Shown here: positions 7,258 through 43,336 of the stretch, piece after piece
How positions within the stretch are numbered: position 1 is the first letter of the stretch
Layout: each line of letters starts with the position of its first letter
Sequence record: PP885688.1
Length of the DNA: 64,000 nt
Strand: one strand, 5' to 3'
Made by a program: the position numbers and the translations under genes
The notes under the pieces: generated by a model
Told to the model about the DNA's origin: nothing
The model's input: only the letters and a program-made list of their open reading frames with translations
Database searches by the model: none

Positions 7258-7291
7258 CTAATACCGCTCGAAGCGGTCAGTCCCGGATTAC
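7258..7291 (-). promoter_or_regulatory. class B promoter motif
   Basis: GTAATC-N20-GGTATTAG upstream of ruvC/recA operon. Confidence 0.7.
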
Positions 7292-7297
7292 TGGGTG

Positions 7298-7333
7298 AAA
7301 AAAAAGCCGGAGCCACAGAGAGGCAGCTCCGGC
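7298..7333 (-). terminator. intrinsic terminator after SSB-like gene
   Basis: GCCGGAGC/GCTCCGGC stem plus T8 on minus strand. Confidence 0.75.
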
Positions 7334-7341
7334 GTGAAGGC

Positions 7342-8121: not shown

Positions 8122-8178
8122 GCGTAAGGCTCCGGATAGTCGGTGTTTCTGTGGCCAGATCAATCGCGGTCACATTTG

Positions 8179-8212
8179 CTAATACCCATCCGGAGGGGCC
8201 TACCTGGATTAC
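8179..8212 (-). promoter_or_regulatory. class B promoter motif
   Basis: GTAATC-N20-GGTATTAG. Confidence 0.7.
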
Positions 8213-8225
8213 TGAGTTGAAAAAA

Positions 8226-9005
8226 TTACGACCATATGCTTGCGATCTGCATGGCGCAGATGTAGGGCTGCATACGGTTCTGCTTCCATCGCGAAAGCAG
8301 TGCAATCGACTGTGCGACGCGCGTGAGATCTAGCGTGAGGTTCTTGAAGTGCTGTTGTTGCGAAGGTTTTATTCCGAGCTTGCTTGCAGCGTCTTCACTC
8401 AATGCGACCGTCGTCGCATAGCCGATCAACTTCTTATGCAGCGAGTGCAGGCGCACGTTGGGATTGATGTCGTTGTTCAGCCAGCCCAGCGGAGACTCCC
8501 ACGGATCTTGCCATAGAGGCCTCGGCTCCAGGTCGGCGCTGAGCATCCACACGGCCTGCCAGATCAGCTCACGAATGTCATCGCAGCGTCCCTTGGTCAA
8601 CGTGTCGCCGACGCGGTCGGTCACATCACGCTTGAGTGTCTTCTCTCTCCCGAGTATCGCGGCGGCGTGCTTCACGATGGTGTTGATTGCAGCAGAGCCT
8701 TTGACGATCGGTTCTGCAGACCACATACCGGTGCGACCACGCAGCTCAGGCGAGAGATCGATCTTGTACTTGGCGCTGACGTGGAAGAGAAGGCCTTCGT
8801 ATCCTGCGAGCATGTCATCGGTCACACGCTCGACAACGCGAGGCTTGGCACCGATCTGCTGCGCGAGGAAGCGGACCTGGGCGGCGTCATCCCCGACCAC
8901 AATGTGGTTCTTGGGGAGAGCCTTCTTGATCAGAAGGTGGGGAACCGGAGGGAGCTCTGAGGAGACAGTAACTCCCTCCCGGCGGGGTTGCATGGAATCA
9001 GCCAT
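8226..9005 (-). CDS. hypothetical protein (possibly degenerate clamp-loader/Pol III delta-like)
   Basis: 259 aa; class B core ends 5 nt before ATG; function only a weak impression. Confidence 0.55.
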   Translation of the reverse strand: MADSMQPRREGVTVSSELPPVPHLLIKKALPKNHIVVGDDAAQVRFLAQQIGAKPRVVERVTDDMLAGYEGLLFHVSAKYKIDLSPELRGRTGMWSAEPIVKGSAAINTIVKHAAAILGREKTLKRDVTDRVGDTLTKGRCDDIRELIWQAVWMLSADLEPRPLWQDPWESPLGWLNNDINPNVRLHSLHKKLIGYATTVALSEDAASKLGIKPSQQQHFKNLTLDLTRVAQSIALLSRWKQNRMQPYICAMQIASIWS

Positions 9006-9029
9006 GAAGGCTAATACCCATGGAGAGGC

Positions 9030-9365
9030 TTACTTCTTGAAAAAGATTTTCGTTTTGTCGAGTAATTTGTGAGCGTGGGCCAGCGTGGACAGTTCATCCT
9101 GCTTCGCCTGCTGGTAGGCGAGGTACGCTTCGGCCTCCCACGTATGTACAAACCCGCAGGTCTTGGTGCGGACCTGATCAGCGGAGTGGAGCACGTGGTT
9201 GAGGATGCGAGCCGCCAGGACACGGACCTCTTTGGGAGCATCCTCGTCGATCGCAACGACGCTGCTCTCGATACGTTTCAATGCATCACTGGCTTCGGCA
9301 AGACGGGACTTCAGAGCAGCAACTTCCTTGTCGAGGAAGAAGGACACGATGAGACGACGGAACAT
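9030..9365 (-). CDS. hypothetical protein
   Basis: 111 aa, GGAGG RBS. Confidence 0.6.
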   Translation of the reverse strand: MFRRLIVSFFLDKEVAALKSRLAEASDALKRIESSVVAIDEDAPKEVRVLAARILNHVLHSADQVRTKTCGFVHTWEAEAYLAYQQAKQDELSTLAHAHKLLDKTKIFFKK

Positions 9366-9391
9366 GGGGACACCTCCTACCGTGGGGTCCC

Positions 9392-10483: not shown

Positions 10484-10488
10484 ACATT

Positions 10489-10519
10489 CAACCTACAAGG
10501 CTAGGTCGCTTTGAGATGA
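10489..10519 (-). promoter_or_regulatory. class A promoter motif (variant)
   Basis: TCATCTCA-N12-CTTGTAGGTTG. Confidence 0.6.
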
Positions 10520-11217
10520 CTTTCGGCCCTTTGTCCCAGATCTTTCTGCAGCCGGGAGTGGGCTTCCGCCACCTGTTCCACGAATTTCTGCGCGGCATAG
10601 AGGTGCAAAAGGACCCGTTCACCGGTCGGGGTGATGGTGTAGCCCTCGTCGTCCTGGCTGGCGATCAGCCCATACTGGTGGGCGACCATGACCATGGCCT
10701 CGGCCAGCGGCGTAATCATCGACCGGAGCAGCTTCTGGCGGTCGGCCTCGGTCAGATCCCAGTCCTGGTCCTTGAGTTCGACCCGCATGGAGCGCATGAA
10801 GGTGTCGACGAGGTCCCCGTCCGGGGATTCCGGCTTCGAGATCTCGTTGAGCATGACGAAGAGCAGCGATCGGTGCGCCTTGATGAAGACTGGAGCCAGG
10901 AGCCGCAGGTTCGACAGCAGAATCTCACCGACGATCGTGGTGACCGCGAACGTTCCGCCGGGCTGGTGAGCTCCCCTGAGCTGTGGATACTTCTCATGCT
11001 CGATCAGGGTGGGCAGGTTGGCGTACTTAGTGAGCAGCTCCTGGCCACGCTCCAGCATGATCTGGGCGAGATACTCGTCGTCGAACTGATTCTCTTCGGT
11101 GCAAACACCTTTGACGAGATCGTCGACCTCTTGGGTAACGTTACGGCTGTGAAAGCGCTGCTGCTGGAGGGCGCGGTGGAGATCTTCAACGGTGCGGAGT
11201 TCTAATAGCTGGCCCAT
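10501..11217 (-). CDS. hypothetical protein
   Basis: 238 aa; class B core 6 nt before ATG. Confidence 0.7.
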   Translation of the reverse strand: MGQLLELRTVEDLHRALQQQRFHSRNVTQEVDDLVKGVCTEENQFDDEYLAQIMLERGQELLTKYANLPTLIEHEKYPQLRGAHQPGGTFAVTTIVGEILLSNLRLLAPVFIKAHRSLLFVMLNEISKPESPDGDLVDTFMRSMRVELKDQDWDLTEADRQKLLRSMITPLAEAMVMVAHQYGLIASQDDEGYTITPTGERVLLHLYAAQKFVEQVAEAHSRLQKDLGQRAESHLKAT

Positions 11218-11233
11218 GTGTTCCTAATACCGG

Positions 11234-11536
11234 TCAGGAGGTCTGTTCCCTGAGTTCTGGTGCGAGATTTAGTTGATGAATGAGGAACCCTAGCAGCGAC
11301 GGGATGCTGCGGAAGGTCTCGCCGATGTTGTTATCGACCTGGGCCCGGTAGTAGTGACCCATGTAGATGTCGACGATCCACGGGATGTTATTGGTCGTGG
11401 CTGCATACCGGAGGTTCGGCACCCCCTTCTCCGATCTTCGTGGAGTGCAGACGGGTGCCGAGCTCGGTATGTTGGCCTGAAGAGCCCCTATGACGATGAG
11501 CAGGCTCTTCACCTTTGGTGGTTTGCGGTTTTTCAT
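11234..11536 (-). CDS. hypothetical protein
   Basis: 100 aa, ATGA overlap with helicase stop. Confidence 0.55.
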   Translation of the reverse strand: MKNRKPPKVKSLLIVIGALQANIPSSAPVCTPRRSEKGVPNLRYAATTNNIPWIVDIYMGHYYRAQVDNNIGETFRSIPSLLGFLIHQLNLAPELREQTS

Positions 11537-13077: not shown

Positions 13078-14700
13078 TTACCTGAATTCAATGGAGTCCA
13101 GCCACCATTTGGGGAGGATGTCCTGGTTCTGTTGCAGAAAACGCCCGAAGTCGGCGTCGAGAATGATCGTGGTGGCGTAGTCTTCGGCGGAGCGCACACT
13201 GCGGCCAGTTGCCTGCACCAGAGTCAGCGCAGTCTGCAGCTGGTACCACTTGGGGTCGCGCTCCATACGGACGCGGTTGTAGGGATCGAGGAAGGGATAG
13301 GGAACCTTCGTGATGATTTGCACGCGGGAGAGATCGTCCTTGAGATCAAGGCCTTCAGTCATCGAAGGACTCATCAGGATCGTTGGGTCGGTGCTCACAA
13401 CATGCTTTTCAATAGCTGCTTCTCGCGAACCCGGGATATTACTGTGGGTCACGATGCGGTAGTCGTTCGTTGTCTGGCTGAACGCATTCGACAGGTAGGT
13501 GTTGATCTTGTACGAGTGCGTGTGGACGATGCCCTTCTTGTCCACGAACTTCGGCGAATTCAGAATGGCGTTGGTGCGCTCAAACGCACGCGGCAGAGAG
13601 GCCTCGATATTCTTCGCGCCCATGCTGCCGACCGGCCAGTACACTATCCGGCGATTGGGAAGAGGGAAGTCCGATGGTGTTGCGTACTGAACCGCTGTCG
13701 ACGCCTTGATGCCTAGGTTGCGGCGGAAGGTGGCGAAGTCCAGAATCGTCGCCGACATCAGCAGTACGTTGGGTGACTGATCGAACAGGTACCGTTGCGC
13801 GAAGTTCGCTGCGGTGAGCGGCTTGATGCAAAGGCTGCCGTTGTTATCGGACCACTCGAACCACTGCTCCGGCTCGTCGGTGTCCATGTACGTCTCAAGG
13901 TTGTTGAGCAGTTGCTGGAAGGTCTCGATGCGATCGAGGAGAGCGGGCTTAGGCTGTACGCCGCTGTCCTTCACCGATTCGAGCTCTTCCTTCAACGAAC
14001 GCAGATAGGAGCCAGCTGCAGGCACGTAGGTCTTATGCAGCCAGTTGCGAACACTGCGCCCATCGCCCGCGTTGAAGTTCGGGACGCGACCAGCATCGAC
14101 GTCAGTCGCCTTATGCTGGGTGATGGTGATCTCGACCATCGAGAGAATCTCGCGCTCGATGTTGTGCGCCTCGTCGGCGATGAGGTAGTCGCGGGGGGTG
14201 AGCTCTCCGCTGTGCATCGTCTCAGTGAGGAAGTAGGAGTAGTTGGTGACGCCGAGCTTGCCGGTGGTGTAACGGTTCTTCGCGTCACGATACGGGCAGC
14301 CTTCGCAGGTCCGGCCCTTGTTCATGTCCGTGCCGGTCTTACAGTCCTGAGGCAGGAACTTGATGCACTTGTAGTTCCGCTTACCGCGTAGCTCTACCAG
14401 ACCCTTGCTGCCGAAGTCGTTGACCAGCTGGGCTGCGAGCGAGTTCTGGGACGTCAGGTAGTGAGCGCCCGATCCATTCTTCTGCTTGGAGGCGTCGATC
14501 GCTGCGGCGAGGCCGATGCCCGACTTACCGCCGCCGGTGGGGATCTCAAGGATGGTGAATTGTTTGTCGGTGTCACGTGCTTCGGCGACTACCGAGAGGG
14601 AAGACTCCTGTGCTGGGCGCACAGTGGGGAAGGGAAAGTTTTCTTTGAGACCATCCAGTGTTGTGGGTTGGTCGATTGTGACTAGTTCGTCCGGGGCCAT
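13078..14700 (-). CDS. dinG: DinG/YoaA-family ATP-dependent helicase
   Basis: EIPTGGGKS, Cys cluster (CIKF..C..CEGCPY), IADEAHN, MSATI, EGLDL, KVPYP, QATGRSVRSAEDY. Confidence 0.9.
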   Translation of the reverse strand: MAPDELVTIDQPTTLDGLKENFPFPTVRPAQESSLSVVAEARDTDKQFTILEIPTGGGKSGIGLAAAIDASKQKNGSGAHYLTSQNSLAAQLVNDFGSKGLVELRGKRNYKCIKFLPQDCKTGTDMNKGRTCEGCPYRDAKNRYTTGKLGVTNYSYFLTETMHSGELTPRDYLIADEAHNIEREILSMVEITITQHKATDVDAGRVPNFNAGDGRSVRNWLHKTYVPAAGSYLRSLKEELESVKDSGVQPKPALLDRIETFQQLLNNLETYMDTDEPEQWFEWSDNNGSLCIKPLTAANFAQRYLFDQSPNVLLMSATILDFATFRRNLGIKASTAVQYATPSDFPLPNRRIVYWPVGSMGAKNIEASLPRAFERTNAILNSPKFVDKKGIVHTHSYKINTYLSNAFSQTTNDYRIVTHSNIPGSREAAIEKHVVSTDPTILMSPSMTEGLDLKDDLSRVQIITKVPYPFLDPYNRVRMERDPKWYQLQTALTLVQATGRSVRSAEDYATTIILDADFGRFLQQNQDILPKWWLDSIEFR

Positions 14701-14705
14701 GAACG

Positions 14706-14739
14706 CTAATACCGTTCCGAGGGCCCCTTCCCTCGATAT
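14706..14739 (-). promoter_or_regulatory. class B promoter motif
   Basis: GATATC-N20-GGTATTAG, 5 nt before dinG ATG. Confidence 0.7.
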
Positions 14740-14744
14740 CTATT

Positions 14745-15410
14745 TCAGATATTCCTGTAGCAGTCCGAAGTGCATGAGAACTCACGCACAAGTCCGCCTT
14801 CACACACAGCCCACTCGTGGTCTTCGAGCAGATCAAGAAGATCCTCAGCGAGCAAGCCGATGGTGTCGCGCAGCTGGTCGTTCGAGACTGCGTCTGGATG
14901 GAAGGTGTGGATGTGTTCGATCTCGCGCTTGAAGCGTTTGCCGACCTCTTCATGCAACGAGCCTGCAGCCACGCACGCTGTCACCAGCTTGTAGGCTTCT
15001 TTCAATCGCGGCCTGGGGAGATCAGTGTGATCGTGCAGGCAGTTCAGCTTCAGCCACAACTTGGTGCGCTCTGTGAGCGCTGCCCAGCGTGGTGCCTTGC
15101 GCGTCTCCAACACCTCAGAGACGTCGTCGTACATGCCTTCGATCTGGAGGTAGCGTTTGGCCTCATGGAGATCATCCGGGCTGAGAGCAACGAATCGCTC
15201 GCGGCGGCGGATCTTCTCCGCGATCACCAGGTCCATATCGCAACGGGCCTTACCGGCGTTCGCAATCCCAGCCAGAGTGATCTGGTGGTAGGGAAGTTTG
15301 TGAAGTTCTTTTTCCGTGAAGACGCGCTCTTCTTCTAGGAGCTGCTGGCGGAATTCGGGGAAGGGGATGCGGGCGATGCCGTGCGGATCGATGTTGATGT
15401 GCAAACTCAA
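14745..15410 (-). CDS. hypothetical protein
   Basis: 221 aa ORF overlapping upstream stop. Confidence 0.6.
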   Translation of the reverse strand: MSLHINIDPHGIARIPFPEFRQQLLEEERVFTEKELHKLPYHQITLAGIANAGKARCDMDLVIAEKIRRRERFVALSPDDLHEAKRYLQIEGMYDDVSEVLETRKAPRWAALTERTKLWLKLNCLHDHTDLPRPRLKEAYKLVTACVAAGSLHEEVGKRFKREIEHIHTFHPDAVSNDQLRDTIGLLAEDLLDLLEDHEWAVCEGGLVREFSCTSDCYRNI

Positions 15411-15724: not shown

Positions 15725-15775
15725 TGATCGTCAAACTCCTGTACCCTAATACCCTAAAACAGGGCAGGAAGGCGT

Positions 15776-15994
15776 TTATTGACGTCCGCGAGATGGAAAA
15801 TTGTGGATATTTTCTCCGAGCCATGGGAAGTCCCGCTTCGCTCCAGAGTCGGTCATCATGTTCATCTTGTTGCCAGGGGTCTTGTGCTCAGTCATCGGCG
15901 TGGAGGTGTCCTCGATGTTCATGTCGCCGTTGTCGGAGACCTCACCCTTCTGATCCATTCCGTATGCCCGGCGGCGTAGCAGCTTCGCTCTCAT
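15776..15994 (-). CDS. small protein with KLLxRRA N-terminal motif
   Basis: Start moved to MRAKLLRRRA, GAGGG RBS; motif shared with 20708..23269 and 34840..35796. Confidence 0.6.
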   Translation of the reverse strand: MRAKLLRRRAYGMDQKGEVSDNGDMNIEDTSTPMTEHKTPGNKMNMMTDSGAKRDFPWLGENIHNFPSRGRQ

Positions 15995-26284: not shown

Positions 26285-26352
26285 GTCGGGTAATACTCGC
26301 CATGAGGCCCCGGCACCCGATATCTTTTTGAGATATTTGGTGCCGGTTTCAT

Positions 26353-27485: not shown

Positions 27486-27878
27486 TTACCGCTGACCAAC
27501 CTCACGCAGGTACTCGCGGGTGAGCTCGACCGACAGCTCCCGGCGCTTCATGCTGCTGGGTAACTCAATGACGGGCTTATTGAGGACGATGAACCAGTCG
27601 ATCTCTTTGGCGACACCGGCGGGAATTGCACCGTCGGGGAGAGCGCGAAACGCAATGGCGTCGCACTCGATCGAGAACTGCTCGAAGAAGGCCATGCGTT
27701 CATCTGAGGTGGGAAGTTTGTTGCACTCGGCGCAGATCGCCGGATCGCTGGGGTTGACAACCTCGAAGCCGAGGTTCTGAAGCGTCTCGATGTCCCGCGC
27801 TTCCTGCTTGGTGCCGTACAGGCCCATGTTATGGGCGTAGTAGATCTTTTTTGTTGTACCCACTGTCCGAATGTCCAT
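27486..27878 (-). CDS. nucleoside 2-deoxyribosyltransferase-like protein
   Basis: KIYYAH..GFEVVNP..CDAIAF..GVAKEI pattern; class B core 5 nt before ATG. Confidence 0.55.
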   Translation of the reverse strand: MDIRTVGTTKKIYYAHNMGLYGTKQEARDIETLQNLGFEVVNPSDPAICAECNKLPTSDERMAFFEQFSIECDAIAFRALPDGAIPAGVAKEIDWFIVLNKPVIELPSSMKRRELSVELTREYLREVGQR

Positions 27879-27917
27879 GACTTCTAATACCCAGACAGTG
27901 GGCGCAACGGTGATTAT

Positions 27918-28616
27918 CTAAGCAACATTTTTCGCGAGCGCAGCAGCCTGCTTGTGGCCGGGAGCGAACCCGACACCACGATCAGGCACGATGGTGCCGC
28001 AGCAGCACTTGCACAAACGCGGCTCCGCGTCCTGCTGAGCAGCTTCCCCAGCAATGACAACAGCCAGAGCCTTACGCGCACGGTAGAGCACGAGCCGGGC
28101 GTTGGCCTCGGTCGTATCAAGCAGCTCCGCCATCGCCTCGAACGAGGTTCCGGCGAGGTGAAGGTTCAGCGCGATACGGAACCGGCCTTCCAGCTTCCCG
28201 ATCGCGTTGTGCACCGTCCGGTGGGCGAGGTTCTGCTCAGCCTTCCGGTCCTCGTAGCCGACGTCGATAGCCTTCCGGATCTGCCCGGTCGAGTTGGTGA
28301 CCATCCGATCGATCGAGTCGACCACCACCTCACGCTCGGTCTTCGTGTCCCGCCGGAACGACTGCGCGGTGTTCTTCGCAATCACAACCGTCCAGGTGCT
28401 GAAGCTCGAATCACCGGCGAAGCTGTCCAACTTACGGAAAGCCTTCACCAGCGTCTCCTGAATGATGTCGTCAATGTCGTCGACGGGCACCAACCGGTAA
28501 AGCTGACGAGTCAAGATGGGCGTGACGTACTCGCAGAGCTGCGTGATTGCAGTCTGGTCGCCCGTGCGGGCGGCTTCAACAAGTACGTTCTGTTCTTCCT
28601 TCGTGAGCCGGATCAT
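27918..28616 (-). CDS. ECF-type RNA polymerase sigma factor
   Basis: Region 2 (GDQTAITQL..DDIIQETLVKAFRKLDSF.GDSSFSTW) and region 4 HTH (SFEAMAELLDTTEANARLVLYRARKAL). Confidence 0.85.
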   Translation of the reverse strand: MIRLTKEEQNVLVEAARTGDQTAITQLCEYVTPILTRQLYRLVPVDDIDDIIQETLVKAFRKLDSFAGDSSFSTWTVVIAKNTAQSFRRDTKTEREVVVDSIDRMVTNSTGQIRKAIDVGYEDRKAEQNLAHRTVHNAIGKLEGRFRIALNLHLAGTSFEAMAELLDTTEANARLVLYRARKALAVVIAGEAAQQDAEPRLCKCCCGTIVPDRGVGFAPGHKQAAALAKNVA

Positions 28617-28617
28617 C

Positions 28618-29211
28618 TTACCCTCTCGTTCCCATGCTGCCGTTCTGAGACTTCGCGTACATGCGCCAGACGTAGGTGTCGAACTCGCGCACCGTCGCCC
28701 CAGCCTTCTTTGCTTCCGCCACGAAGATCGCCTCCCACTTCGCGTACGACTTACCCGCTGGTGGTGTGGCCTTCGGTGCGTCCTCGTACCCCAGCTTGCG
28801 CAGGTACTTGAGGATGTGAGTGTCAAGCGGCACCACCTCTGCGTCTGGCAGGTAGTACAGCAACGTCATGCGTGCCGTCTTAGGGCCGATCCCATGGACA
28901 CTCTCAAGAGAGGCCACGGAGATGTTGTCCAGGTCGAGCTCCACGACCTGGGTGAATGCCTTGTAGATCCGCCCATACTGCCCGACCCGGTGCTTGGTCA
29001 GCAGCGCCATGAGTGTTCCCTTGGCCATGGCGGAACGCACGCGATCAAACGGACTGGCGTGTCGGCCAAAGTCCTTGAGGAGTGCGTCCAGCTTCTTGCG
29101 CGTCTGCGTTGCTTCTTTGTTAGCTACGCATATGCCAAAGAGGATCCAATCCTCCAGCTGGTGCCGCGTGAGTGACGAGGGGATATTGGTTGGGTTTACA
29201 GTCGAGTCCAT
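28618..29211 (-). CDS. HhH-GPD family DNA glycosylase
   Basis: LESVHGIGPKTA..VPLDTHILKYL; class B core 5 nt before ATG. Confidence 0.75.
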   Translation of the reverse strand: MDSTVNPTNIPSSLTRHQLEDWILFGICVANKEATQTRKKLDALLKDFGRHASPFDRVRSAMAKGTLMALLTKHRVGQYGRIYKAFTQVVELDLDNISVASLESVHGIGPKTARMTLLYYLPDAEVVPLDTHILKYLRKLGYEDAPKATPPAGKSYAKWEAIFVAEAKKAGATVREFDTYVWRMYAKSQNGSMGTRG

Positions 29212-29216
29212 GTGGG

Positions 29217-29250
29217 GTAATACCCATGGAGCCTCTGAAAAAGTGATTAC
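29217..29250 (-). promoter_or_regulatory. class B promoter motif
   Basis: GTAATC-N20-GGTATTAC ahead of glycosylase-sigma operon. Confidence 0.7.
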
Positions 29251-29357
29251 TGATTTCACTTTTAGCCGCTAGTCCCGGGAGGGAGCGGAAGTGCATCGGG
29301 CGGTCAGTCAACATACTCTCTCCTTTCGGGTTGAGTACGGACATTCCGCCCGTACTC

Positions 29358-31101: not shown

Positions 31102-31153
31102 TTCTAACCCTCGAAACCTAATACCCAAAAAAGAGTCATGAGGTCGATTATTG

Positions 31154-31193
31154 AAAAAAGAAAATTTGCCCGGCCTGTTGAGCGCCGGGCAAA
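31154..31193 (-). terminator. terminator after NAMPT gene
   Basis: TTTGCCCGGC/GCCGGGCAAA stem plus T tract. Confidence 0.75.
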
Positions 31194-33763: not shown

Positions 33764-33817
33764 GAATAAGTCCCTCACCGGCTAATACCGTTCCGAGGGG
33801 CGCGAGGGTGATTATTG

Positions 33818-33851
33818 AAAAAGAAAAAGCCCAACTTTTTAGGGTTGGGCT
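33818..33851 (-). terminator. terminator after tmRNA coding piece
   Basis: AGCCCAAC/GTTGGGCT stem plus TTTTCTTTTT. Confidence 0.75.
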
Positions 33852-34092: not shown

Positions 34093-34128
34093 ACAATTCA
34101 ACACACGCGGTAATGTTCATGTGCTGAA

Positions 34129-34395
34129 TGGTGGACCCGGCGAGAATCGAACTCGCGTCCGAATGACAAAACAAAGAGCATGTCTTTTCACTAGCTTTAC
34201 CACTCCTCTGTTAAGAGGCGGCGTCTGCGATGATCTGCAGGAATATCAAATTTGAAAGATTCTCAGAGGCTACCTGGGTAGCTTGATGTTGCAGCCCTGA
34301 GTGACTCACCTCCGGGTAGCGTTACTGCGGTCCGGCAGCGTAAATCACTCAGGTACTAATAGGGGATTCGGAAGTCGTTTCTCATCCGTCCCACA
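34129..34395 (-). ncRNA. ssrA: permuted tmRNA, acceptor piece
   Basis: Ends GGACGCGAGTTCGATTCTCGCCGGGTCCACCA at 34129 (T-arm, discriminator A, CCA); pairs with coding-piece 5' end including G3.U70; 5' end inferred from promoter at 34401. Confidence 0.85.
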
Positions 34396-34400
34396 CTTAC

Positions 34401-34434
34401 CTAATACCCAAGTGCGGGGCACTTCACCCATTAT
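34401..34434 (-). promoter_or_regulatory. class B promoter motif for tmRNA
   Basis: ATAATG-N20-GGTATTAG. Confidence 0.65.
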
Positions 34435-34778
34435 TGTTTTCGTAATCCCCAATCACTTGTATCGAGGACGACGACGGTGTCGCTGTTGGTAGGTAGCGGC
34501 TCGACCCCTGCCATGTAGTCGGTGACCACAAGCTTGCCGCGCGGGACCGACTGGTGCGTCCCCAGAACACAGTCCCAGATACCGCCGACGACTTCCTGCT
34601 TGCGCTCCTTCCATGTCGCCTTCCTCCGATAGATGAACGGGTGGAAGTCGATGCGGAAGTGCACGCGGTCAGCGGGGTGCATGTAGATTCGAATCTGGGC
34701 ATCCTTCACAGCCAGTGCGGTGATGTAAGCGACAGCTTCGGCGAGGCGGTGTAGATTTCTTTGCTGCGATTGCGTCAC
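34431..34778 (-). CDS. hypothetical protein
   Basis: 115 aa, AGGAG RBS, class B motif at 34810. Confidence 0.65.
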   Translation of the reverse strand: MTQSQQRNLHRLAEAVAYITALAVKDAQIRIYMHPADRVHFRIDFHPFIYRRKATWKERKQEVVGGIWDCVLGTHQSVPRGKLVVTDYMAGVEPLPTNSDTVVVLDTSDWGLRKQ

Positions 34779-34839
34779 TACTTACTCCTGGGCGCAAGCG
34801 CCACATACCCTAATACCCGTCCTACAGGCGCTTGGGCGA

Positions 34840-35796
34840 TTACTGAGGGGAAGATTCCTGCTTGACGTGCTCAACCAGCCACAGAGGCTTGTCGTAGGTG
34901 CTCTTCTTGTCGCTCTTCGTGATCCGGATATCGACGCCCTCTGCTGGCACCGGTAGCAATGTAACCTGGCCCGGCTTCGTAGGAAGTTGCTCCGGCGTCA
35001 TCCCTGCAAACGCGTAACCACCGATAACCTGATCGTTGGTGAGCAGATTCTGGAAGGTGACGCCAGGAGCGCGGGGAGCGATGCTAGCTTCCTTGACCTC
35101 GACAGGCTCAGCGTCGAAGTCCTTTGAAGTGACTCCGTCGGCGATCTGCTCCACGTCGATGAACATGCTGGCGCTGTCTTCGACCCACTCCACGTTGAGT
35201 CTGCGGCGGACTCGGTCAAACAGTTCGCGGGCCTGGTCATCATCGAGACCATCGATCAGGTCGGCGTTCTCCGGCAGCTTGTTCTCCAAGGCACGGATGA
35301 AGTCATAGTGCGCCCACTCGTTCCAGGCATCGTCGATCGCCTCATGACCAGCCTGGGCGTGGTCGTCAGAGTCCATGGTGGGGTCCTGATCGAGGGCCTT
35401 GAGGTCATCGAGGATCGAGCCTGTGATGGCGCTGATGCGGATCGCGATGCCGAAGGAGCCCTTATCGCCCTTGATCGGGAACACACCTTCGATGTCGGCG
35501 TAGCGCTTGAGGAAGACTCGATAGTTGCTGACCGCTGCCGCATCCTTCTGCAGGTCTGAGCCGGTGAGGCTGTTCGGCAGGAGGAAGGAGCCGGGATCGA
35601 TCTCGCCGCTGCCATTCTCGTTGTGGCGGATGTCGCGGAAGAGCTCGGGCGCTTCCTTGTCGGAGAGGTAGACCTCTTCACGGTGATGGCGGACGTAGTC
35701 CAGCACTTCGGCGGACGCGTCTACAGCGTGAACTTCAACTTCGGGCTCGGCCTGTACAACATCGGCGATGCGGATCAACAGCTTGCTCTTGGACAT
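34840..35796 (-). CDS. acidic hypothetical protein, possibly virion-associated
   Basis: Start moved to MSKSKLLIRIA, GGAG RBS. Confidence 0.7.
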   Translation of the reverse strand: MSKSKLLIRIADVVQAEPEVEVHAVDASAEVLDYVRHHREEVYLSDKEAPELFRDIRHNENGSGEIDPGSFLLPNSLTGSDLQKDAAAVSNYRVFLKRYADIEGVFPIKGDKGSFGIAIRISAITGSILDDLKALDQDPTMDSDDHAQAGHEAIDDAWNEWAHYDFIRALENKLPENADLIDGLDDDQARELFDRVRRRLNVEWVEDSASMFIDVEQIADGVTSKDFDAEPVEVKEASIAPRAPGVTFQNLLTNDQVIGGYAFAGMTPEQLPTKPGQVTLLPVPAEGVDIRITKSDKKSTYDKPLWLVEHVKQESSPQ

Positions 35797-37307: not shown

Positions 37308-37334
37308 GAAAAGGCCTCATGTGCTAATACCCAT

Positions 37335-39401
37335 CTAGGAGGCTCTTGCCTGAATAAGTCGTGAACCCCAATCTGCGGGTCGTCCTTTCGGCTTCTTGGT
37401 CAGCGAGTCGTGGATCGTGACATGGAAGGCTCGCGGGGTGCTGCGGGTGCTCTGATCGCGGTAGAACTCGATGACGTCCTTCGGGGTTCCGTCGGGATCT
37501 TTGACCTCGACGATGTTGAGCTCCAGGTGGCGGACCTCGGGGGTGCGCTGCACGGTCGCGGCGGTCACAACCTTCTTATAGGTGGCGTCGGTGAAGGCCA
37601 GCGGCATCTCGAAGCTTCCTTCGTACATGCGGAGGGTCGGATCCTGGGAGCTCATGCCGGAGTCGGTGGCACTTTCGCCGGTGATGTCACGGAAGCAATC
37701 CTGTGCGAGGCCGGTGACCTCGACGATCTCGTCCTCGGTGTACTTCATGGAGAGCAGGAAGGCCGAGATATCGTCGAGCAGAGCAGAGCAGGCCTGGCGG
37801 CTGAAGCTCGAGACTTCGGCGTGCGTCAGACCGTTGATCGGGAAGGTAATTGTGAATTGGGTGAAATTGGGTATGCCTAGGTCGAGGCCGATGGTGACCT
37901 GTGGACGCGTGCCCTGCTCGATAGCAACAGTAAGCTCGGCGTTGCGTGGGGAGATGAAGGCGGTCTTCGGGGCGGTGACGGGGCGATAGGCCTGGATCGC
38001 GGTGTCACCACGCAGTCGTGCTGCACAGATGCGATGGAAACCGTCGATGACTCGACCTTTGCGGCTAACCACTACGGGCGGGAACGGTGTCTTCTCGTCT
38101 GCATACTCGCGGATCCGCTCAGCGGGAGATGGGGTATCGGCCTGGAAGCGGAACTCGAGACTCTCCATGTTTCGCGCATTCCAAAGGTCGTCGGGGTGGA
38201 GCTCGTTCAGATTGAACGTGCCCAGTTTCCACTCGGGGCACTGCGCGATCTGCCTGGCATACGATTCCTTGCCGTTGAAGCCGCTACCCTTGGTGATGCC
38301 GCGAACGTACTGGATCAGATCTTTGGAGGAGATGGTGTCTGGACCCTGCACCGCAATCTTCATCACATAGATGCCATTCTTCGCGTCTCTCTTCACTGGA
38401 TAGCGCTGCTTCAAACGTCCCCAGGCCTTCTTGGCGTCAGACGTCTGGTCGCTGCTCGACTGGAAGTACTCGGCTCCGAGCTTCTTCGCTTCCTCGATCG
38501 CCTTGTCATAGAGCAGCTGGCCGAGGCCGGTACCGCGCCAGTCATCCTCGACGTTGATGTCGTAGACCATGAGGGCGTTTGCGTCTTGGTTCTCGGGCTT
38601 GCCGACTTCGATGTAGCCGACCGTGACGCCGCCATCACGCAGACGTTCGGTGTGCGGATACATCTCGGCAGGAGCGACAGCCCAGATGACCCACAGCTCG
38701 TTCAGCGCGGGCGTACCGTCATTCACAAAGCGGAGTTGAGAGAGATCTTTCGCCGCGCCGGTCTTAGCCGCTGGCTCCTTCGGTTCACCGTACACAGCGA
38801 ACACAGGCTCGGGCTTGATACTCTTTGAAATCGTCGTATTCTCAACCGAGTCCACGAGGCCAAAGTTGATGCGTCCGTTATTCCCACCGATGTAGCTGAT
38901 GATCCAATCCCGACCGTCATAATGCAGCGGCTTGCCGACATATTGATCAGCGTAACGACGCGCGTCGCCGACCACACGGGGGTGCTCCGGTGCACGGTGC
39001 TGCCACAGTTTGAAGGCGTCGTCCGACACGGAGTGAAGCGGAACGCCCATTCCGGGGACAAGTTTCAGACCGTTGGTCCTGAGCCATGCATCCGCTGCGT
39101 CGTAGAGCTTGGTGGCAACGCCCTTGCGCTGGAACTTCGGGTCCACGGCGGCCTTGTATACGGTGCGCTCATCCTTGGGGCAGTCGTCACACTTCCACGG
39201 CCACAGTGAGATGTAGCCGATGAGACGGGTTCCAATGTAGGCCCGGAACTCATACTCACCGCCGCCTCTGCGTCCCTGGCCCTGGCGGATTTTGACCTTG
39301 TCGATGGTGAAGCCAGCAGGCACGGGCGTCTCGCTGGTGAACATCTCTTTACCAGCGGCGAGGGTTGTGATCGGGTTGAGCAGACTGGCGCGGACGGTCA
39401 T
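37335..39401 (-). CDS. polyvalent protein: two GNAT domains + ParB-like domain
   Basis: FQRKGVATKLY; WRGTGLGQLLY..QTSDAKKAW; PPVVV..VIDGFHRICAA; start MTVRASLL with AGGGG RBS. Confidence 0.7.
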   Translation of the reverse strand: MTVRASLLNPITTLAAGKEMFTSETPVPAGFTIDKVKIRQGQGRRGGGEYEFRAYIGTRLIGYISLWPWKCDDCPKDERTVYKAAVDPKFQRKGVATKLYDAADAWLRTNGLKLVPGMGVPLHSVSDDAFKLWQHRAPEHPRVVGDARRYADQYVGKPLHYDGRDWIISYIGGNNGRINFGLVDSVENTTISKSIKPEPVFAVYGEPKEPAAKTGAAKDLSQLRFVNDGTPALNELWVIWAVAPAEMYPHTERLRDGGVTVGYIEVGKPENQDANALMVYDINVEDDWRGTGLGQLLYDKAIEEAKKLGAEYFQSSSDQTSDAKKAWGRLKQRYPVKRDAKNGIYVMKIAVQGPDTISSKDLIQYVRGITKGSGFNGKESYARQIAQCPEWKLGTFNLNELHPDDLWNARNMESLEFRFQADTPSPAERIREYADEKTPFPPVVVSRKGRVIDGFHRICAARLRGDTAIQAYRPVTAPKTAFISPRNAELTVAIEQGTRPQVTIGLDLGIPNFTQFTITFPINGLTHAEVSSFSRQACSALLDDISAFLLSMKYTEDEIVEVTGLAQDCFRDITGESATDSGMSSQDPTLRMYEGSFEMPLAFTDATYKKVVTAATVQRTPEVRHLELNIVEVKDPDGTPKDVIEFYRDQSTRSTPRAFHVTIHDSLTKKPKGRPADWGSRLIQARAS

Positions 39402-39408
39402 AGTTCCC

Positions 39409-42400
39409 CTACTTACCATCCGGTAGCGAACCGGCGGCGGTATAGTCTGCGGTCTCTCCGTTGAGCCATGCGAGGAAGGCGGGGTCCGACTTAATGCCAG
39501 CAGGTGCTGCCGCCTGCTTGCGTGGCTGCAGGAGCCTCGACGTCTTTTGAGGAGCGTCTGTGTCGTGTTCCAGTTCCTGCTGCAGCTGTTCTGGTGTGGT
39601 CTTATCAAAGGAATCGCGATAGTCGTTCTTTACGGAGTTGACTACCTCGTGATACTTACCACTGATGTTCTCACTGAGCGACGGCTTGTCTTCGCTGCGC
39701 CGGTCTTCCATGTCGTCGCTCTTGTAGCCCTTCGGGAGCTGATCGATCCTCTGTGTGAAGCTGCTGGGTTGTGTCGTTGGCTGTTGTTGAGTGGGTTGCG
39801 TGTTTCCCGGATGAGCCATCATGAACGGAGCGAGGGCGAGGCCCAGCCAGTCCTTCTTTGCAGCTTCCTTGTTGGCAACGTACTCGGCCCAGTGCTGTTT
39901 GCGCTCCGCTTCAGGGTTGGTGGATGCGAGATGAGTGTTCGTGAGATCGAGGTACTTCGCAGTAAATGAGCGGCCAAGGATTGCGGCTGCGGTTGCGCGA
40001 TGGTTTCCGTCGAGCAGCCACAGGCCAGACTGCGTCTTCGCGACGATCATCGGCTCTTTGTCCGACGTTGCGTCCACCAGATCGGGGTGCGCGAGAAAGT
40101 AGTCGACGCCCTTCGCGGTCACCATGTTCTGGCTGACCTTCACCTGATCGGGACTGAACGTCTTGGTCTCTGCCTCCGCCATCAGCTTGTGTAGTGGAGT
40201 CGTGAGCGTGAAGAGCTTCATGAATGTTGGGCCGGACTCGTCAACCTTCAACCACCGCTGCTTGACCCAAGTCTTGTAGGGGGCTTCCACGTATGGCGAT
40301 GTGAGGTCCTCTTCTGTGTGCCAAACACCTGTCTTGGCTATCGCGCCAACGATCTTCACTGGTCCGATGTGTGCGGCCTTACCGCTGTCCCGTATGATCT
40401 GTTTCGAGATCTCGGGCTTCTGCTTCGCGAGGACAATCGCCAGACGCTTCAGATAGCGGAAGAACATGGTCCGCTTGATCGGAGACGCCAGATCTTGAAT
40501 CGCTTCACGGCGGTTGCCCTTCCAGTCCGGGTCTCCGCCAGAGCAGATCCAGAACATGTTGAAAACCTCGGCAAAGTAGTGGTCATTACCGTTGAGCTCT
40601 CCACCCTCAATCAGCTCGCCGAGGGAGTCTTCGTCGGGGATCAGGTGAGAGTCACCCGAGTCGACCTGAACCTGCAGCACGACACCGTCTTCCCCTGCGT
40701 AGTTCTCCGCGATCACAGGATCGGTGGTGATGTAGACCGCGTTCTCCTGGGGTGCTGGGCCTCCGCTGTTCTGTGCCTTTCCGGGGACGATCTCACCTGC
40801 AGCCTCGATCGCCGCCGCATTGGCCGCAGAGGTGCCGTGATACCACTTCTCGGCAGAGGCACTCTTGCGCGTTACGAAGTTGAATCGGTCGAGCTCTTCG
40901 CCGTTGAGCTGATCGAAGGTCTTTCCGGGCGCGACCTCTTCCAGTGCAGCCTTGAACTCTGGCGACGCCATGTATTTGCGGCCAGCTTCACGGGCCTCAT
41001 TCACTGTAAGGAATCGAGCCTTCTTGCTTGCGGTGGTGCTGTGATTCTGAGTGCTGAACTCGCCGTTATTGCCAATGGCTGACTTTGCCTGGCTCTTGTC
41101 GAAGATCTTGTACTCGACCTCACCGGAGTTCTCGCCATAGCCTTCGTGAATCGCACCGTCGAAGCCCTTCGCTTTAGCCTCCGCAATGAACTCGTTGTCT
41201 CCGAGAAGTGGGAACGCGAACATGTAGAGCTCGTGTAGACGATCCGGGGCCTCGGTCAGCATTTGCTCAACGCTATCGAACTCCTGAGACCAATCCTCCT
41301 CCCACGCACCCGTCTCGCTGATTCCGTCAGCATGCTTGAGCGCGTACTTCATGGCGACGTCCTCACCCATCTGTGTGGCGAGATCTGAGAAGTTGATGAA
41401 CGGCTCGTCGAGCGTGTTCAAGATCGGATTCTCGATGCGCAGATAGCAGGCGTAGACACGTGGTCGGGCAGGTATGTCACCCTGCTCATTCGGTGACTCT
41501 GCGTAGAGGCTGGCGGTACCGGCGTCGCCGAAGCTGATTGCTGTATCGCGAGAGTGAAACTCTTCGTTCGACTCTCCATGCTCCCCGCGATAGACGACGA
41601 GAGGATTGCCTTGGGCATCCTTGACGAGGGAGTTGCGAAACCACGCTTTGAAGGCTGGTGTGTCTGTGAGTTTCTGTGCCTGGGCCGGTGCCTCTGCGAC
41701 CGCAGCGGTAACCGCGAAAGAGTATGAGTGATTCCCTTCGTAGCCGTCGTCCTCAGCCTCAGCTGCGGTTTGGATAACGATCGGATAGTCCGTGTGGAAC
41801 TGGTCGTAGGTTGGATCCACGACAAGACCCTGTATCGTCAGCCATGTGTGGGAGACCCCGTTGTACTCCCCGGCGGTCATCGCACAGCGGTGTCCGTTCT
41901 TGGTGAGCAGGGTGTAGAGCTCCTCGGTGACGGGGATGCAGTCTCCGTCCTTCGCAGTGCGGGTTCCTATCGTGTTGTGACGTGCCTGCTGGGCGACCTC
42001 GGTGAGTTGTTCGTTTGTCAGCGGGGCGGAAGCCGTAATGCTCTTATTGTTTGGATCGAACGCGCCACTGTTGCCGATCGCAGACTTGACTTGATTAGGA
42101 TTGAAGACGATCCAGCTGTCATTCCCGGCGTCCTCGACGACGTTCTCGTAAACGATTCCGTCGTACCCCATACCCTCAAGGACCTTGAAGGCCGCGTCGT
42201 TGTCGTACTGGAGCTCCCAGAACGTGTCGCTGTCGATGATGTTCTGTTCGCGTAGGGTCATGGCGACGGAATCTTCGCCTTCCCAGCCGCGTGGGTAACG
42301 TCGCTCTCCATCCTCGTCGTCATCCGAGAGCGGCTCACCATCGTCACCGATGGAAGCAAGGTCAGGTAGACGCAGGGCATTCTTGATCGACAGGTAGACA

Positions 42401-43197
42401 GGAACGATGTTCGCGCCATGGCTGCGTGCGGGGTTCTTGATGGTGTTGTCGTAGAAGCTGGTCAGATCGGAGTGCCGATCGTTCGCGGCTTGCTGCGTCC
42501 CAAAGTGTGTGAACGCGCGGAACTCTCCGATGTCGGACTGGGTCGCGTGGTACATCACGAGTGGCTTGCCCGCCTTGTCGACTACCTCTGACCCGGCGAA
42601 CCAGGCCTTGAATGCCGGTGTCTCAGTGACCGGCATAGTGGCCGGTTTTGACTCCGCGGAATTCGCTGATTCTGGGGTGTTTACCTCAACCTCTGGCTCT
42701 GCGATGGCCGCTTGTTTGGCCGATCCTTTTCCGAGGCCCTTCTCGTCTAGAATCCCCTTGAGGTGGTCGAGGAGTTCTTCCAGCGTCTCGTATACCGGCA
42801 TACCGGCACGCTCGCAGACAATGTCCACGTTTCCCTTGCGGTAGAAGCCTTGGGGACACGCCACAGCGCCGGGCACTTCGAGGTGCGCTCCGAGTTCTTC
42901 GAAGGTGATGGGTGACTTGCTGCTCTCCTCAAAGTTGAAGATGCGGAAATCGGCGGCTTCGAGGTTGTCCTGCTCCCACTCGACCTGCTCGCGGAAGTTG
43001 GGGTCATCCTTGCTCTGCTCCCACGACGAGTCCCAGTCCGCGCGGCGCGGGTTGGTGAGCACGACGTCGTAGTCAGCAAGGGCCTCGACGACCATCTTCT
43101 GCCAGTCGCGTGACTCGCCCATGTCGATGGTGCCTGCCAAGAAGATGCTGAACCGGTCCGCCGGTACCTTGTGTGGTGCTTGGATCTCTGTCGCCAT
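39409..43197 (-). CDS. large polyvalent protein: NDT-like + two ART-PolyVal + transglutaminase-like + ART + ParB-like
   Basis: IFLAGTIDMG..W..NPRR..EWE; twice TPAFKAWF..D..G.PLV.Y..GYDG..VKSAIGN.G.F; GDC..HTW..VDPT; WYHGT..PDEDS; LLDGNHRATAA. Confidence 0.75.
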   Translation of the reverse strand: MATEIQAPHKVPADRFSIFLAGTIDMGESRDWQKMVVEALADYDVVLTNPRRADWDSSWEQSKDDPNFREQVEWEQDNLEAADFRIFNFEESSKSPITFEELGAHLEVPGAVACPQGFYRKGNVDIVCERAGMPVYETLEELLDHLKGILDEKGLGKGSAKQAAIAEPEVEVNTPESANSAESKPATMPVTETPAFKAWFAGSEVVDKAGKPLVMYHATQSDIGEFRAFTHFGTQQAANDRHSDLTSFYDNTIKNPARSHGANIVPVYLSIKNALRLPDLASIGDDGEPLSDDDEDGERRYPRGWEGEDSVAMTLREQNIIDSDTFWELQYDNDAAFKVLEGMGYDGIVYENVVEDAGNDSWIVFNPNQVKSAIGNSGAFDPNNKSITASAPLTNEQLTEVAQQARHNTIGTRTAKDGDCIPVTEELYTLLTKNGHRCAMTAGEYNGVSHTWLTIQGLVVDPTYDQFHTDYPIVIQTAAEAEDDGYEGNHSYSFAVTAAVAEAPAQAQKLTDTPAFKAWFRNSLVKDAQGNPLVVYRGEHGESNEEFHSRDTAISFGDAGTASLYAESPNEQGDIPARPRVYACYLRIENPILNTLDEPFINFSDLATQMGEDVAMKYALKHADGISETGAWEEDWSQEFDSVEQMLTEAPDRLHELYMFAFPLLGDNEFIAEAKAKGFDGAIHEGYGENSGEVEYKIFDKSQAKSAIGNNGEFSTQNHSTTASKKARFLTVNEAREAGRKYMASPEFKAALEEVAPGKTFDQLNGEELDRFNFVTRKSASAEKWYHGTSAANAAAIEAAGEIVPGKAQNSGGPAPQENAVYITTDPVIAENYAGEDGVVLQVQVDSGDSHLIPDEDSLGELIEGGELNGNDHYFAEVFNMFWICSGGDPDWKGNRREAIQDLASPIKRTMFFRYLKRLAIVLAKQKPEISKQIIRDSGKAAHIGPVKIVGAIAKTGVWHTEEDLTSPYVEAPYKTWVKQRWLKVDESGPTFMKLFTLTTPLHKLMAEAETKTFSPDQVKVSQNMVTAKGVDYFLAHPDLVDATSDKEPMIVAKTQSGLWLLDGNHRATAAAILGRSFTAKYLDLTNTHLASTNPEAERKQHWAEYVANKEAAKKDWLGLALAPFMMAHPGNTQPTQQQPTTQPSSFTQRIDQLPKGYKSDDMEDRRSEDKPSLSENISGKYHEVVNSVKNDYRDSFDKTTPEQLQQELEHDTDAPQKTSRLLQPRKQAAAPAGIKSDPAFLAWLNGETADYTAAGSLPDGK

Positions 43198-43248
43198 AAG
43201 TCCCCTACAAAGAAGCCGGTATTCCTTCGGTCGGAATAGGCCCATTTG

Positions 43249-43336
43249 CTAATACCCATCGCGAGGGGCTGAGGGCGAATATTAAAAAATTTCCCCACTT
43301 CAAATTCATCTTTGGGTCGATCTGGTTTGCAGGTTG
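43249..43336. promoter_or_regulatory. divergent control region: class B (minus) and class A (plus)
   Basis: ATATTC-N20-GGTATTAG on minus; TCATCTTT-N12-TTTGCAGGTTG at 43306-43336 on plus. Confidence 0.7.

Follow-up and report, generated by a model that had tools for sequence, protein, structure and literature searches.

What reads the short signal that recurs in front of many genes of a large soil phage, and which part of the phage programme does it serve? The question arises from a window of 64,000 nucleotides (nt), the whole stretch of DNA analysed here. It is identical in sequence to positions 124001-188000 of the record of Tunturiibacter phage Tunturi_5 (PP885688.1), a jumbo myovirus with a genome of 308,711 bp which was isolated from tundra soil on an Acidobacteriota host. 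A preliminary description of the window had proposed a promoter, class B, that consists of the box RTAWTC, a spacer of 20 nt and the core GGTATTA(G/C). The motif was surveyed in the whole Tunturi_5 genome as well as in the window. It behaved as a promoter class with respect to enrichment, strand, intergenic placement, fixed distance to start codons, conservation and a -10 region that is not of the sigma70 type. With moderate confidence we regard class B as a phage-specific promoter class of Tunturi_5 and its relatives which drives middle genes, is read by the host core RNA polymerase with the phage sigma factor gp211 and is accompanied by masking hairpins. The paper describing Tunturi_5 makes no mention of promoters, sigma factors, leaderless genes or transfer-messenger RNA (tmRNA).

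The window contained 15 exact matches to GGTATTAS, all of them on the minus strand, compared to 0.56 expected from shuffled sequences (maximum 3). The bipartite motif RTAWTC-N20-RGTATTAS, with at most one mismatch, was found 11 times, compared to 0.01 expected. The comparison with shuffled sequence, which had been proposed as a check, came out strongly in favour of the motif. Fourteen exact copies were found where they had been described before, and the core at 26290 reads AGTATTAC, as had been stated. One further exact copy at 3154-3161, a doubtful one inside gp181, had been overlooked. Of the 16 window sites, 15 are intergenic or at gene ends and lie on the strand of the next gene, in agreement with the claim that the motif stands just upstream of genes. 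The box is indeed weak or shifted at 9011, 11224 and 26290; in addition, it is shifted by 1 nt at 14706 (GATATC-N21).

In the whole genome 54 exact GGTATTAS cores were found. Together with about 8-10 variant cores that have a good upstream box (AGTATTAG/C, GGTATTGA, GGTATTAA and GGTATCAA) this amounts to about 60-65 copies. The 54 exact copies were placed by hand on the deposited annotation. About 50 of them are intergenic or at gene ends and 3-4 lie inside genes; those at the gene ends or between genes all have the strand of the following gene. The non-coding share of the genome was estimated at about 8%. Of the 64 occurrences of the hexamer GTATTA in the genome, at least 57, by inspection, stand in a class B context.

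A sequence logo was built from the 54 exact sites, with columns counted from the first G of the core (0). From upstream to downstream it shows an A/T tract (columns -44 to -34), T-C at -29 and -28, the box RATAWTC (-27 to -21), either G-rich (CAGGGWA) or C-rich (CACCCTC) bases (-21 to -15), G at -12, a C-rich stretch (-11 to -7), T-G at -2 and -1, GGTATTAS (0 to 7) and C at 8. A pyrimidine occupies column 12 in 41 sites and a purine column 13 in 46. The earlier remark that many spacers contain CCTC corresponds to the C-rich columns -11 to -7. Box and core are coupled: scores of at least 13 with a position weight matrix (PWM) of the upstream half nearly always go along with a core at exactly +20. 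By the bases after the box two sub-types can be distinguished. The G-rich one (TCAGGGWA) is located mostly at record positions 3-140 kb; for the C-rich one (TCACCCTC) the main locations are 150-168 kb and the tRNA region (240-257 kb). They may reflect local promoter duplication or a functional split.

Both halves of the motif are A/T-rich and contain TAAT or ATTA, and the preliminary description had offered a dimeric activator bound to this TAAT...ATTA quasi-palindrome as an alternative to a sigma factor. However, when the core is read as its reverse complement, CTAATACC, only 4 of 8 positions agree with the box consensus CRATAWTC. The halves are unequal in length and conservation, and their centres are 28 bp or about 2.7 helical turns apart, on different faces of the helix. 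Moreover, all copies have the orientation of their genes, whereas a symmetric site could stand either way round. The palindrome does not hold up, and a dimeric activator or repressor is very improbable.

The logo does not correspond to a sigma70 promoter. The -10 pattern TAnnnT is missing: in the frame set by the start codons the core reads GTATTA, in the alternative frame TATTA(G/C), and the last base is never T (54/54). A TTGACA-like -35 element at 16-18 bp from the -10 is missing as well, the bases at the canonical place being CASGGW. RATAWTC ends 20 nt before GGTATTAS and 22 nt before TATTAS. Scanning positions 26-44 kb with a sigma70-type consensus gave 1 site compared to 5.3 expected, and none at a core.

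Annotated start codons lie exactly 5 nt past an exact core in 11 cases and 6 nt past it in one case. Four further starts stand behind the AGTATTAG/C variants (gp4 primase, gp47 dUTPase, gp170 and gp207 helicase). These about 16 start codons all lack a ribosome site. Another 15 or so copies have one (GAGG, GGAG or GGGAG) that begins at column 13, and there the start codon follows 14-21 nt past the core. Pyrimidine-purine is the usual signature of a transcription start. Since column 13 is either the A or G of the start codon or the first G of the ribosome site, with a pyrimidine before it, we take the sixth base after GGTATTAS as the predicted transcription start. With column 13 as +1, GTATTA is at -12 to -7, and about 16 copies, around a quarter of the promoters, would give leaderless mRNAs. 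The geometry between GTATTA and start codon recurs in relatives and in the class A promoters introduced below. For Acidobacteria 9.7-19.4% leaderless genes have been predicted, whose start codons are preceded at about 12 bp by TANNNT (PMC3160421), so that leaderless phage mRNAs on an Acidobacteriota host appear reasonable. The preliminary description had missed the start codons 5 nt past the core, the ribosome sites at the same position and the hairpin behind CCTC.

Some annotated starts look misplaced when compared with the promoters (window 7166-7241; record 248839, 223764 and 103219). For gp184 a start at GTG 7241, with GGGAG 7 nt upstream, is more likely. The start of gp303 is likely the ATG 5 nt past the core, and that of gp270 may have to be moved 94 codons towards the 5' end. 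In gp139 the start given in the annotation is located upstream of the gene's own promoter core.

Eight metagenomic relatives retain the GTATTA core and the GTATTA-N6-ATG spacing at orthologous genes. Relatives are represented in SRR21229958, GCA_030012885.1 and SRR29837706. The metagenomic contigs L121 and L122 have the same gene order and encode sigma proteins 62% identical to gp211. Box, core and exact spacing are kept there at the promoters of the gp212-sigma operon, gp210, gp216 and gp207; the spacers have diverged. More distant relatives, on contigs of 39-307 kb, were found via the gp192 helicase (49-62% identity). Both the core and the GTATTA-N6-ATG spacing recur in L205-L208, L210 and L211. 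The distant relatives have GTATTA or GGTATTGA/GGTATCTC at orthologous promoters and a more variable upstream box. Counted over nine related loci, including L209, GTATTA occurs 42 times on the gene strand versus 4 times on the other. A 303-kb relative encodes a sigma factor of the extracytoplasmic function (ECF) type that is 38% identical to gp211 and has the same Cys-rich tail, and the motif stands directly upstream of it.

Phages of the phiCbK type and Erythrobacter phage vB_EliS-L02 share gp212 but have neither this sigma factor nor the motif. As a negative control, 632 kb around ordinary bacterial ECF genes contained no bipartite motif; this set comprised 80 ECF loci with 27-43% identity in the best segment, obtained from a metagenome scan with a sigma alignment. 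A scan of IMG/VR for ATAATC-N20-GGTATTAG yielded, among the matches listed, single chance ones only, mostly on A/T-rich contigs, and a protein query of IMG/VR with gp211 gave only one weak match. In the L209/L212 lineage, a sister lineage of lower GC content (48-49%, helicase 56% identical), no ECF sigma factor was seen in the 20 kb examined. This lineage uses a different repeated upstream signal, CCGTATATTAAGAGT or CCAGCTCCGTATATTAAGAGT, before several genes; promoter and reader may have co-diverged there.

Class B precedes the genes of the clamp, primases, helicases, DnaB, SSB, UvsX/RuvC neighbours, ligases and exonucleases. It also precedes those of dUTPase, dCMP deaminase, thymidylate synthase, ribonucleotide reductase, deoxynucleoside monophosphate kinase and the NAD salvage pair, as well as tRNA arrays, the permuted tmRNA and both sigma-like genes. 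Few copies are found in the tail, baseplate and head modules. Of the middle/late regulon that had been suggested, the middle part is supported; the late part is not, class B being nearly absent from the structural modules. About 24 of 40 structural genes have a C-rich, TTAGRGAGG-like signal 2-30 nt upstream of the start codon. Its forms are a C-rich run followed by TTAGRGAGG, TTTGTAGGGGA or TTATAGGAG; it also stands before gp187 orthologs in relatives, and the TTTGTAGGGGA form lies directly before the annotated start of gp225 at 43197. Tentatively, this signal is a late promoter class, or partly a ribosome site.

A second promoter-like motif, class A, contains the hexamer TAGGTT and has 35 copies genome-wide. 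It is laid out as an A/T tract, cAAAKTCATCTTTGG, N8 and GGTTTG-TAGGTT-GAG, and it precedes mostly small genes to which no function is assigned. Ten copies read TAGGTT-N6-ATG, the same geometry as at the predicted leaderless starts of class B. Class A is presumably read by the host primary sigma factor, and we infer that it is early and host-type. Its upstream part, CCAAAG-TCAT-CTTTGG, is an inverted repeat and could be an operator. Like class B, class A has an A/T tract and, 21 nt upstream of the hexamer, an A.A.TCA box; the spacer that had been called unusually long is not specific to class B. As the upstream half (box and A/T tract) is common to both classes, the class-specific part is the -10 region. 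The common half is perhaps contacted by the alpha subunit or acts as a -35 region.

The CCTC of the spacer belongs to an inverted repeat: it forms the 5' arm, the ribosome site or the start-codon region forms the 3' arm, and the core is in the loop. A hairpin was forced around each core, either with its own flanks or with flanks swapped between sites. Own flanks paired better (mean -11.8 versus -9.0 kcal, z = -7, 54 sites), and -15 kcal or lower was reached by 17 of the 54 sites, compared to 8% of the swapped pairs. The excess was found again in the relatives (z = -4.3, in a loosely filtered set) and was absent at the -10 of class A promoters (z = -1.1). In about 20-28 of the 54 copies the geometry resembles the masking hairpins of phage T4, with the Shine-Dalgarno sequence and/or the start codon in the 3' arm, at -10 to -12 kcal or lower. 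The stems at the helicase promoter differ between phages: GGGGCC/GGCCCC, which surrounds the core and the ATG of gp192, in Tunturi_5 and CGTCCTG/CAGGACG in L207.

A hairpin excess specific to class B, the T-runs after some hairpins and the fixed distance to the start codon would also suit a signal for RNA processing or termination. A nuclease of the phage or of the host could cut polycistronic RNA in or after the GGUAUUAG loop and thereby produce leaderless monocistronic mRNAs, or the hairpins could end upstream RNA. Such a signal is quite improbable. The box keeps its fixed distance of 20 nt with or without a hairpin, which is typical of a protein on duplex DNA, and copies in divergent regions (window 43249; record 44477, 212804 and 223823) have no upstream transcript on the same strand. 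A scan with a terminator consensus gave no excess and no terminator at the cores, for which reason intrinsic termination was rejected for most copies. A hairpin followed by a T-run was seen at some copies, for example at record 45408, 218496 and 161331. Pairing of the core with a conserved 16S rRNA segment was considered too and was discarded, since the predicted transcript begins downstream of the core.

The hairpin also allows a different assignment of the promoter elements. RATAWT, which resembles TATAAT and is followed by G-rich bases like a discriminator, might be the true -10 with a start about 7 nt after it. The hairpin would then start 2-3 nt from the 5' end, and GGUAUUAG would be the conserved loop of a hairpin in the 5' untranslated region, with a role in mRNA stability or in the recruitment of ribosomes or of a phage RNA-binding protein; two proteins, gp125 and gp223, are annotated as RNA-binding. 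However, it is the box that varies in the relatives (ATAAGG, ATAAAG, AAATCC, TTTTTC), whereas GTATTA is invariant. In class A the same box takes the place of the -35 region, 21 nt upstream of TAGGTT, and the logo has no -35 signal upstream of RATAWT. Many copies lack a usable hairpin, and translation would suffer from a start codon hidden in the 3' arm. We consider RATAWT improbable as the -10.

The candidate reader of class B is encoded within the window. Residues 9-184 of gp211 align to residues 10-184 of E. coli sigmaE, end to end and without linker insertion, and the protein passes the cut-off of the ECF superfamily. Beyond region 4 it has a conserved C-terminal tail of about 45 amino acids (window 27918-28060) with the pattern C-x-C-x-C...G-H. 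The tail motif R-x-C-K/R-C-x-C-G ... G-H-K/G is present in all four orthologs (38-62% identity) and is possibly a zinc-binding module. The class B motif stands before the sigma gene or its operon in four of four phages (window 29217 before gp212-gp211, L121:2756, L122:930 and L208:8394). Thus, the promoter precedes the operon of the sigma factor itself, and the suggestion that a phage ECF sigma factor reads the motif is plausible.

The majority of ECF sigma factors control their own genes (PMC5758882), and E. coli sigmaE reads a GTC -10 (PMC6648896). Because ECF sigma factors usually drive their own genes and GGTATTA contains GTA, gp211 together with the host core RNA polymerase is, judged from these sequence features, the most likely reader. 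Known promoters of this group (group 4) are GGAACTT / GTC for sigmaE and TGAAAC-N16-CGTA for B. subtilis sigmaW (PMC6648896, PMC5758882). Class B resembles them in the RpoE-like nature of gp211, in the GTA of its -10, in copies close to the consensus and in the promoter of the sigma operon; for the -10, GTA against GTC and CGTA is a resemblance only. In contrast to ECF systems, no anti-sigma gene adjoins gp211, which has a Cys-rich tail instead.

Several observations speak against this assignment of class B and against a general masking role of the hairpins. ECF promoters normally have AAC in the -35 region and spacers of 14-17 bp (PMC5758882). In the 54-site logo the box RATAWTC contains no AAC, and 20 nt separate its end from the core; only about half of the copies have a GGGAA(C)-like run, which lies 13-14 nt from the core, 3 bp too close. 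Compared to sigmaE, gp211 has no linker insertion that would explain the longer reach. The upstream box is common to class A and consequently is no evidence for gp211. The second annotated sigma-like gene, gp3, also stands behind a class B copy and could encode the reader, and the co-occurrence of sigma factor and motif could simply be shared ancestry. As to the hairpins, a convincing stem is found in only a third to a half of the copies, which is why the hairpin is an accessory feature. Leaderless copies should not need masking of the start codon, and the tmRNA copy has a hairpin though there is nothing to translate.

Alternatively, class B might be read by the host primary sigma factor with a phage appropriator or activator, in the manner of MotA/AsiA of T4, or by gp3 and not by gp211. 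The A/T tract and the A.A.TCA box have the same distance to the -10 as in class A, whose hexamer fits TAnnnT, and TATTAG retains the T-A-T of a primary -10. The box breaks the rules for ECF promoters (PMC5758882), and gp3, annotated as a sigma factor, is located behind a class B copy. On the other hand, G or C always stands in the place that corresponds to the key -7 T, and GTATTA is invariant in the clade. No MotA/AsiA-like gene is present in the annotation, which was not searched for homologs, and gp3 has no Pfam or PHROG sigma match. Furthermore, in four phages the motif is found at the ECF gene itself. We regard a host sigma factor or gp3 as an unlikely reader, although one with an appreciable chance.

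With gp211 as the reader, the following course of events can be proposed. The first gp211 would be produced by read-through from the class A promoter at window 30297, upstream of gp214, which would be read by the host sigma factor. Then gp211 would activate class B, including its own operon (positive feedback) and gp3, and the late genes would follow class B. The core would act as the -10 region with the clade-invariant GTATTA at about -12 to -7, and upstream contacts would be provided by RATAWTC (about -40 to -34) and the A/T tract (about -57 to -47). In RNA that reads through from upstream the hairpin would fold away the ribosome site or start codon, or transcription would stop there. RNA started at the class B promoter would have no 5' arm and would be translated.

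It is also conceivable, although rather doubtful, that class B sits in hairpin loops for the purpose of melting and not for RNA masking alone. In this case the inverted repeats would extrude under negative supercoiling and offer single-stranded GTATTA to an ECF sigma factor that melts DNA weakly, and the conserved Cys-rich tail of gp211 would read RATAWTC immediately upstream of the usual -35 position. If true, group-4 sigma factors would have a further, novel promoter geometry. Combined with the start codons and Shine-Dalgarno sequences at the 5' terminus, it would amount to a genome-wide coupling of transcription start to translation competence in an Acidobacteriota phage.

Sigma factors encoded by phages are represented by gp28 and gp33/34 of B. 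subtilis phage SPO1. For gp36 of phiEco32 the promoter tAATGTAtA with a start 6-8 bp downstream has been reported, and for gp47 of Salmonella phage 7-11 the promoter GTAAtg-N16-aCTA (PMC8948821). Class B resembles such systems in that the phage's own sigma factor with the host core would read a near-invariant, phage-only consensus before non-early genes. In its GTAT-containing -10 and in the few bases from there to the predicted start, class B is similar to phiEco32. It differs by its consensus, a longer spacing, a replication rather than a late regulon, predicted leaderless transcripts and hairpins around the -10. We file class B as a further case of phage-specific sigma-dependent promoters outside the primary-sigma family; it lacks two of the defining features of ECF promoters and has the position before the sigma operon that autoregulation would require.

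The middle promoters of T4 consist of a MotA box and a sigma70 -10 and depend on sigma appropriation by AsiA. They serve the same class of genes as class B (replication, recombination, nucleotide metabolism, tRNAs) and are likewise bipartite with a non-standard upstream element. However, in T4 the new part is the upstream box, joined to a host -10, whereas in class B the new part is the -10; neither a MotA box (TGCTT-type near -30) nor a sigma70 -10 was found in the 54-site logo. Late promoters of T4 lie inside masking hairpins at the genes e, soc, 49 and I-TevI (PMC3014915). There, as in class B, the hairpin has the promoter in its 5' arm or loop and the Shine-Dalgarno sequence or start codon in its 3' arm, so that only RNA started at the promoter would escape. 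In T4 this concerns a handful of genes, whereas in class B it is a statistical trait of about 60 copies, including leaderless and tmRNA units.

Leaderless mRNAs are also known for lambda cI and for Thermus phage phiYS40. The predicted leaderless class B transcripts share with those of Actinobacteria, Deinococcus-Thermus and (predicted) Acidobacteria the -10 fixed 6 nt before the start codon and the lack of a ribosome site (PMC3160421). They differ from the host-type rule by the hexamer GTATTA in place of TAnnnT, whereas TAGGTT-N6-ATG of class A fits it exactly. The hairpin promoters of N4 have a stem of 5-7 bp and a loop of 3 nt. Class B does not conform to this type, with loops of 6-10 nt and many copies without a stem, and a giant virion polymerase of the N4 type is absent from the annotation of the record, in which no specific search was made.

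To our knowledge, a promoter has not yet been reported from any Acidobacteriota phage. About 60 putative transcription units of Tunturi_5 are now mapped with predicted start sites, and corrections to several gene starts are suggested. A three-class picture of the phage programme emerges with class A as the inferred early, host-type class, class B for replication and a tentative late class. Judged by the sequence features, class B is distinguished by a high share of predicted transcripts that are leaderless or have a 5'-terminal Shine-Dalgarno sequence and by its class-wide embedding in hairpins. The latter would extend a control known from a few T4 genes to a whole regulon. If confirmed, the compact, near-invariant promoter and its candidate ECF sigma factor could provide orthogonal expression parts for Acidobacteriota, for which few genetic tools exist. 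The features are compiled in Table 1.

Table 1: Class B copies and associated features. Positions refer to the window unless the record or a contig is named; +1 is the predicted transcription start.
Feature	Position	Strand	Remarks
Doubtful class B copy	3148..3205, core 3154-3161	-	inside gp181 (exonuclease); box GTAATT shifted 1 nt; upstream PWM score <8; no gene start nearby
Class B promoter, gp184 (RuvC-like)	7252..7309, core 7258-7265	-	box GTAATC N20; +1 is first G of GGGAG; GTG at 7241
Class B promoter, gp185 (SSB)	8173..8230, core 8179-8186	-	box GTAATC N20
Class B promoter, gp186	9005..9062, core 9011-9018	-	annotated ATG 9005, 5 nt past core, predicted leaderless; box replaced by TCTTTTTC
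Class B promoter, gp189	11218..11275, core 11224-11231	-	ATG 11217, 6 nt past core, predicted leaderless; weak box AGAACTC
Class B promoter, gp192 (DinG/Rad3-type helicase)	14700..14757, core 14706-14713	-	ATG 14700, 5 nt past core, predicted leaderless; GATATC N21
Class B promoter, gp194	15740..15797, core 15746-15753	-	AGGAG begins at +1; GTG start 15724
Class B promoter, gp207 (UvrD-type helicase)	26284..26341, core AGTATTAC 26290-26297	-	ATG 26284, 5 nt past core, predicted leaderless
Orthologous sites of gp207 promoter	L122:3312, L206:1057
Class B promoter, gp210	27878..27935, core 27884-27891	-	ATG 27878, predicted leaderless; long-range hairpin CCCACTG/CAGTGGG kept in relatives
gp211, RpoE-like ECF sigma factor, candidate reader	27918..28616	-	sigma2 and sigma4 domains, Cys-rich C-terminal tail
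gp212 (HhH/Ogg-like, phrog_11575)	28618..29211	-	first gene of gp212-gp211 operon
Class B promoter, gp212-gp211 operon	29211..29268, core GGTATTAC 29217-29224	-	ATG 29211, predicted leaderless
Class B promoter, gp216	31112..31169, core 31118-31125	-	GAGGG from +1; ATG 31101; conserved at L121:835
Class B promoter, gp218-gp217 (cytidyltransferase/NMNAT-like and nicotinamide phosphoribosyltransferase)	33776..33833, core 33782-33789	-	GAGGG at +1
Permuted tmRNA gene	33899-34195	-	Rfam RF04321, 86.4 bits, E 3.5e-15
Class B promoter, tmRNA	34395..34452, core 34401-34408	-	about 205 nt upstream of tmRNA; core inside 10-bp hairpin
Class B promoter, gp219	34804..34861, core 34810-34817	-	
Class B promoter, gp223-gp222	37318..37375, core 37324-37331	-	GAGG at +1; ATG 37307; overlaps gp224 3' end
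Class B promoter, gp225 (1262-1278 aa polyvalent-type protein)	43243..43300, core 43249-43256	-	divergent region
Class A, first base of TGTAGGTT-type 8-mer	2603, 4870, 10497, 17962, 30297	-	
Class A, first base of TGTAGGTT-type 8-mer	18031, 43328, 44723, 45045, 46112	+	
Structural-gene signal, examples	43200-43215; record 28035-28050, 261480-261497, 283000-283015		window example before gp225
CCAGCTCCGTATATTAAGAGT sites	L212:5400-5448, 7110-7158, 11005-11053; L209:13380-13405

Some copies within the window have further features. The box variant TCTTTTTC of the gp186 promoter is also kept in the relatives L205 and L207. A terminator-like hairpin with a T-run precedes the gp218-gp217 promoter. 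The tmRNA that had been placed behind the motif was recovered with Rfam, downstream of the 34401 copy. This permuted (two-piece) tmRNA is unannotated in the record, and ARAGORN gave no call for it. Permuted tmRNAs occur typically in Alphaproteobacteria and in a few further groups. Tunturi_5 has replication genes in common with Caulobacter phiCbK-like phages. ARAGORN called a tRNA-Leu (GAG) at window 59758-59848 on the plus strand, antisense within the tail-region gene gp245 (57296-60616, minus strand); this call is probably false.

Two class B copies elsewhere in the genome have an unusual position. One is found at record 261821-261836 inside gp321, which encodes a polyvalent protein of 1362 amino acids. 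It has a fair box and an in-frame ATG exactly 5 nt further on, and a shorter leaderless isoform of 1251 amino acids is conceivable. The other copy, at record 89150-89189, is followed within about 40 nt by a strong terminator-like hairpin with a T-run and has no annotated gene; it could give rise to a short non-coding transcript.

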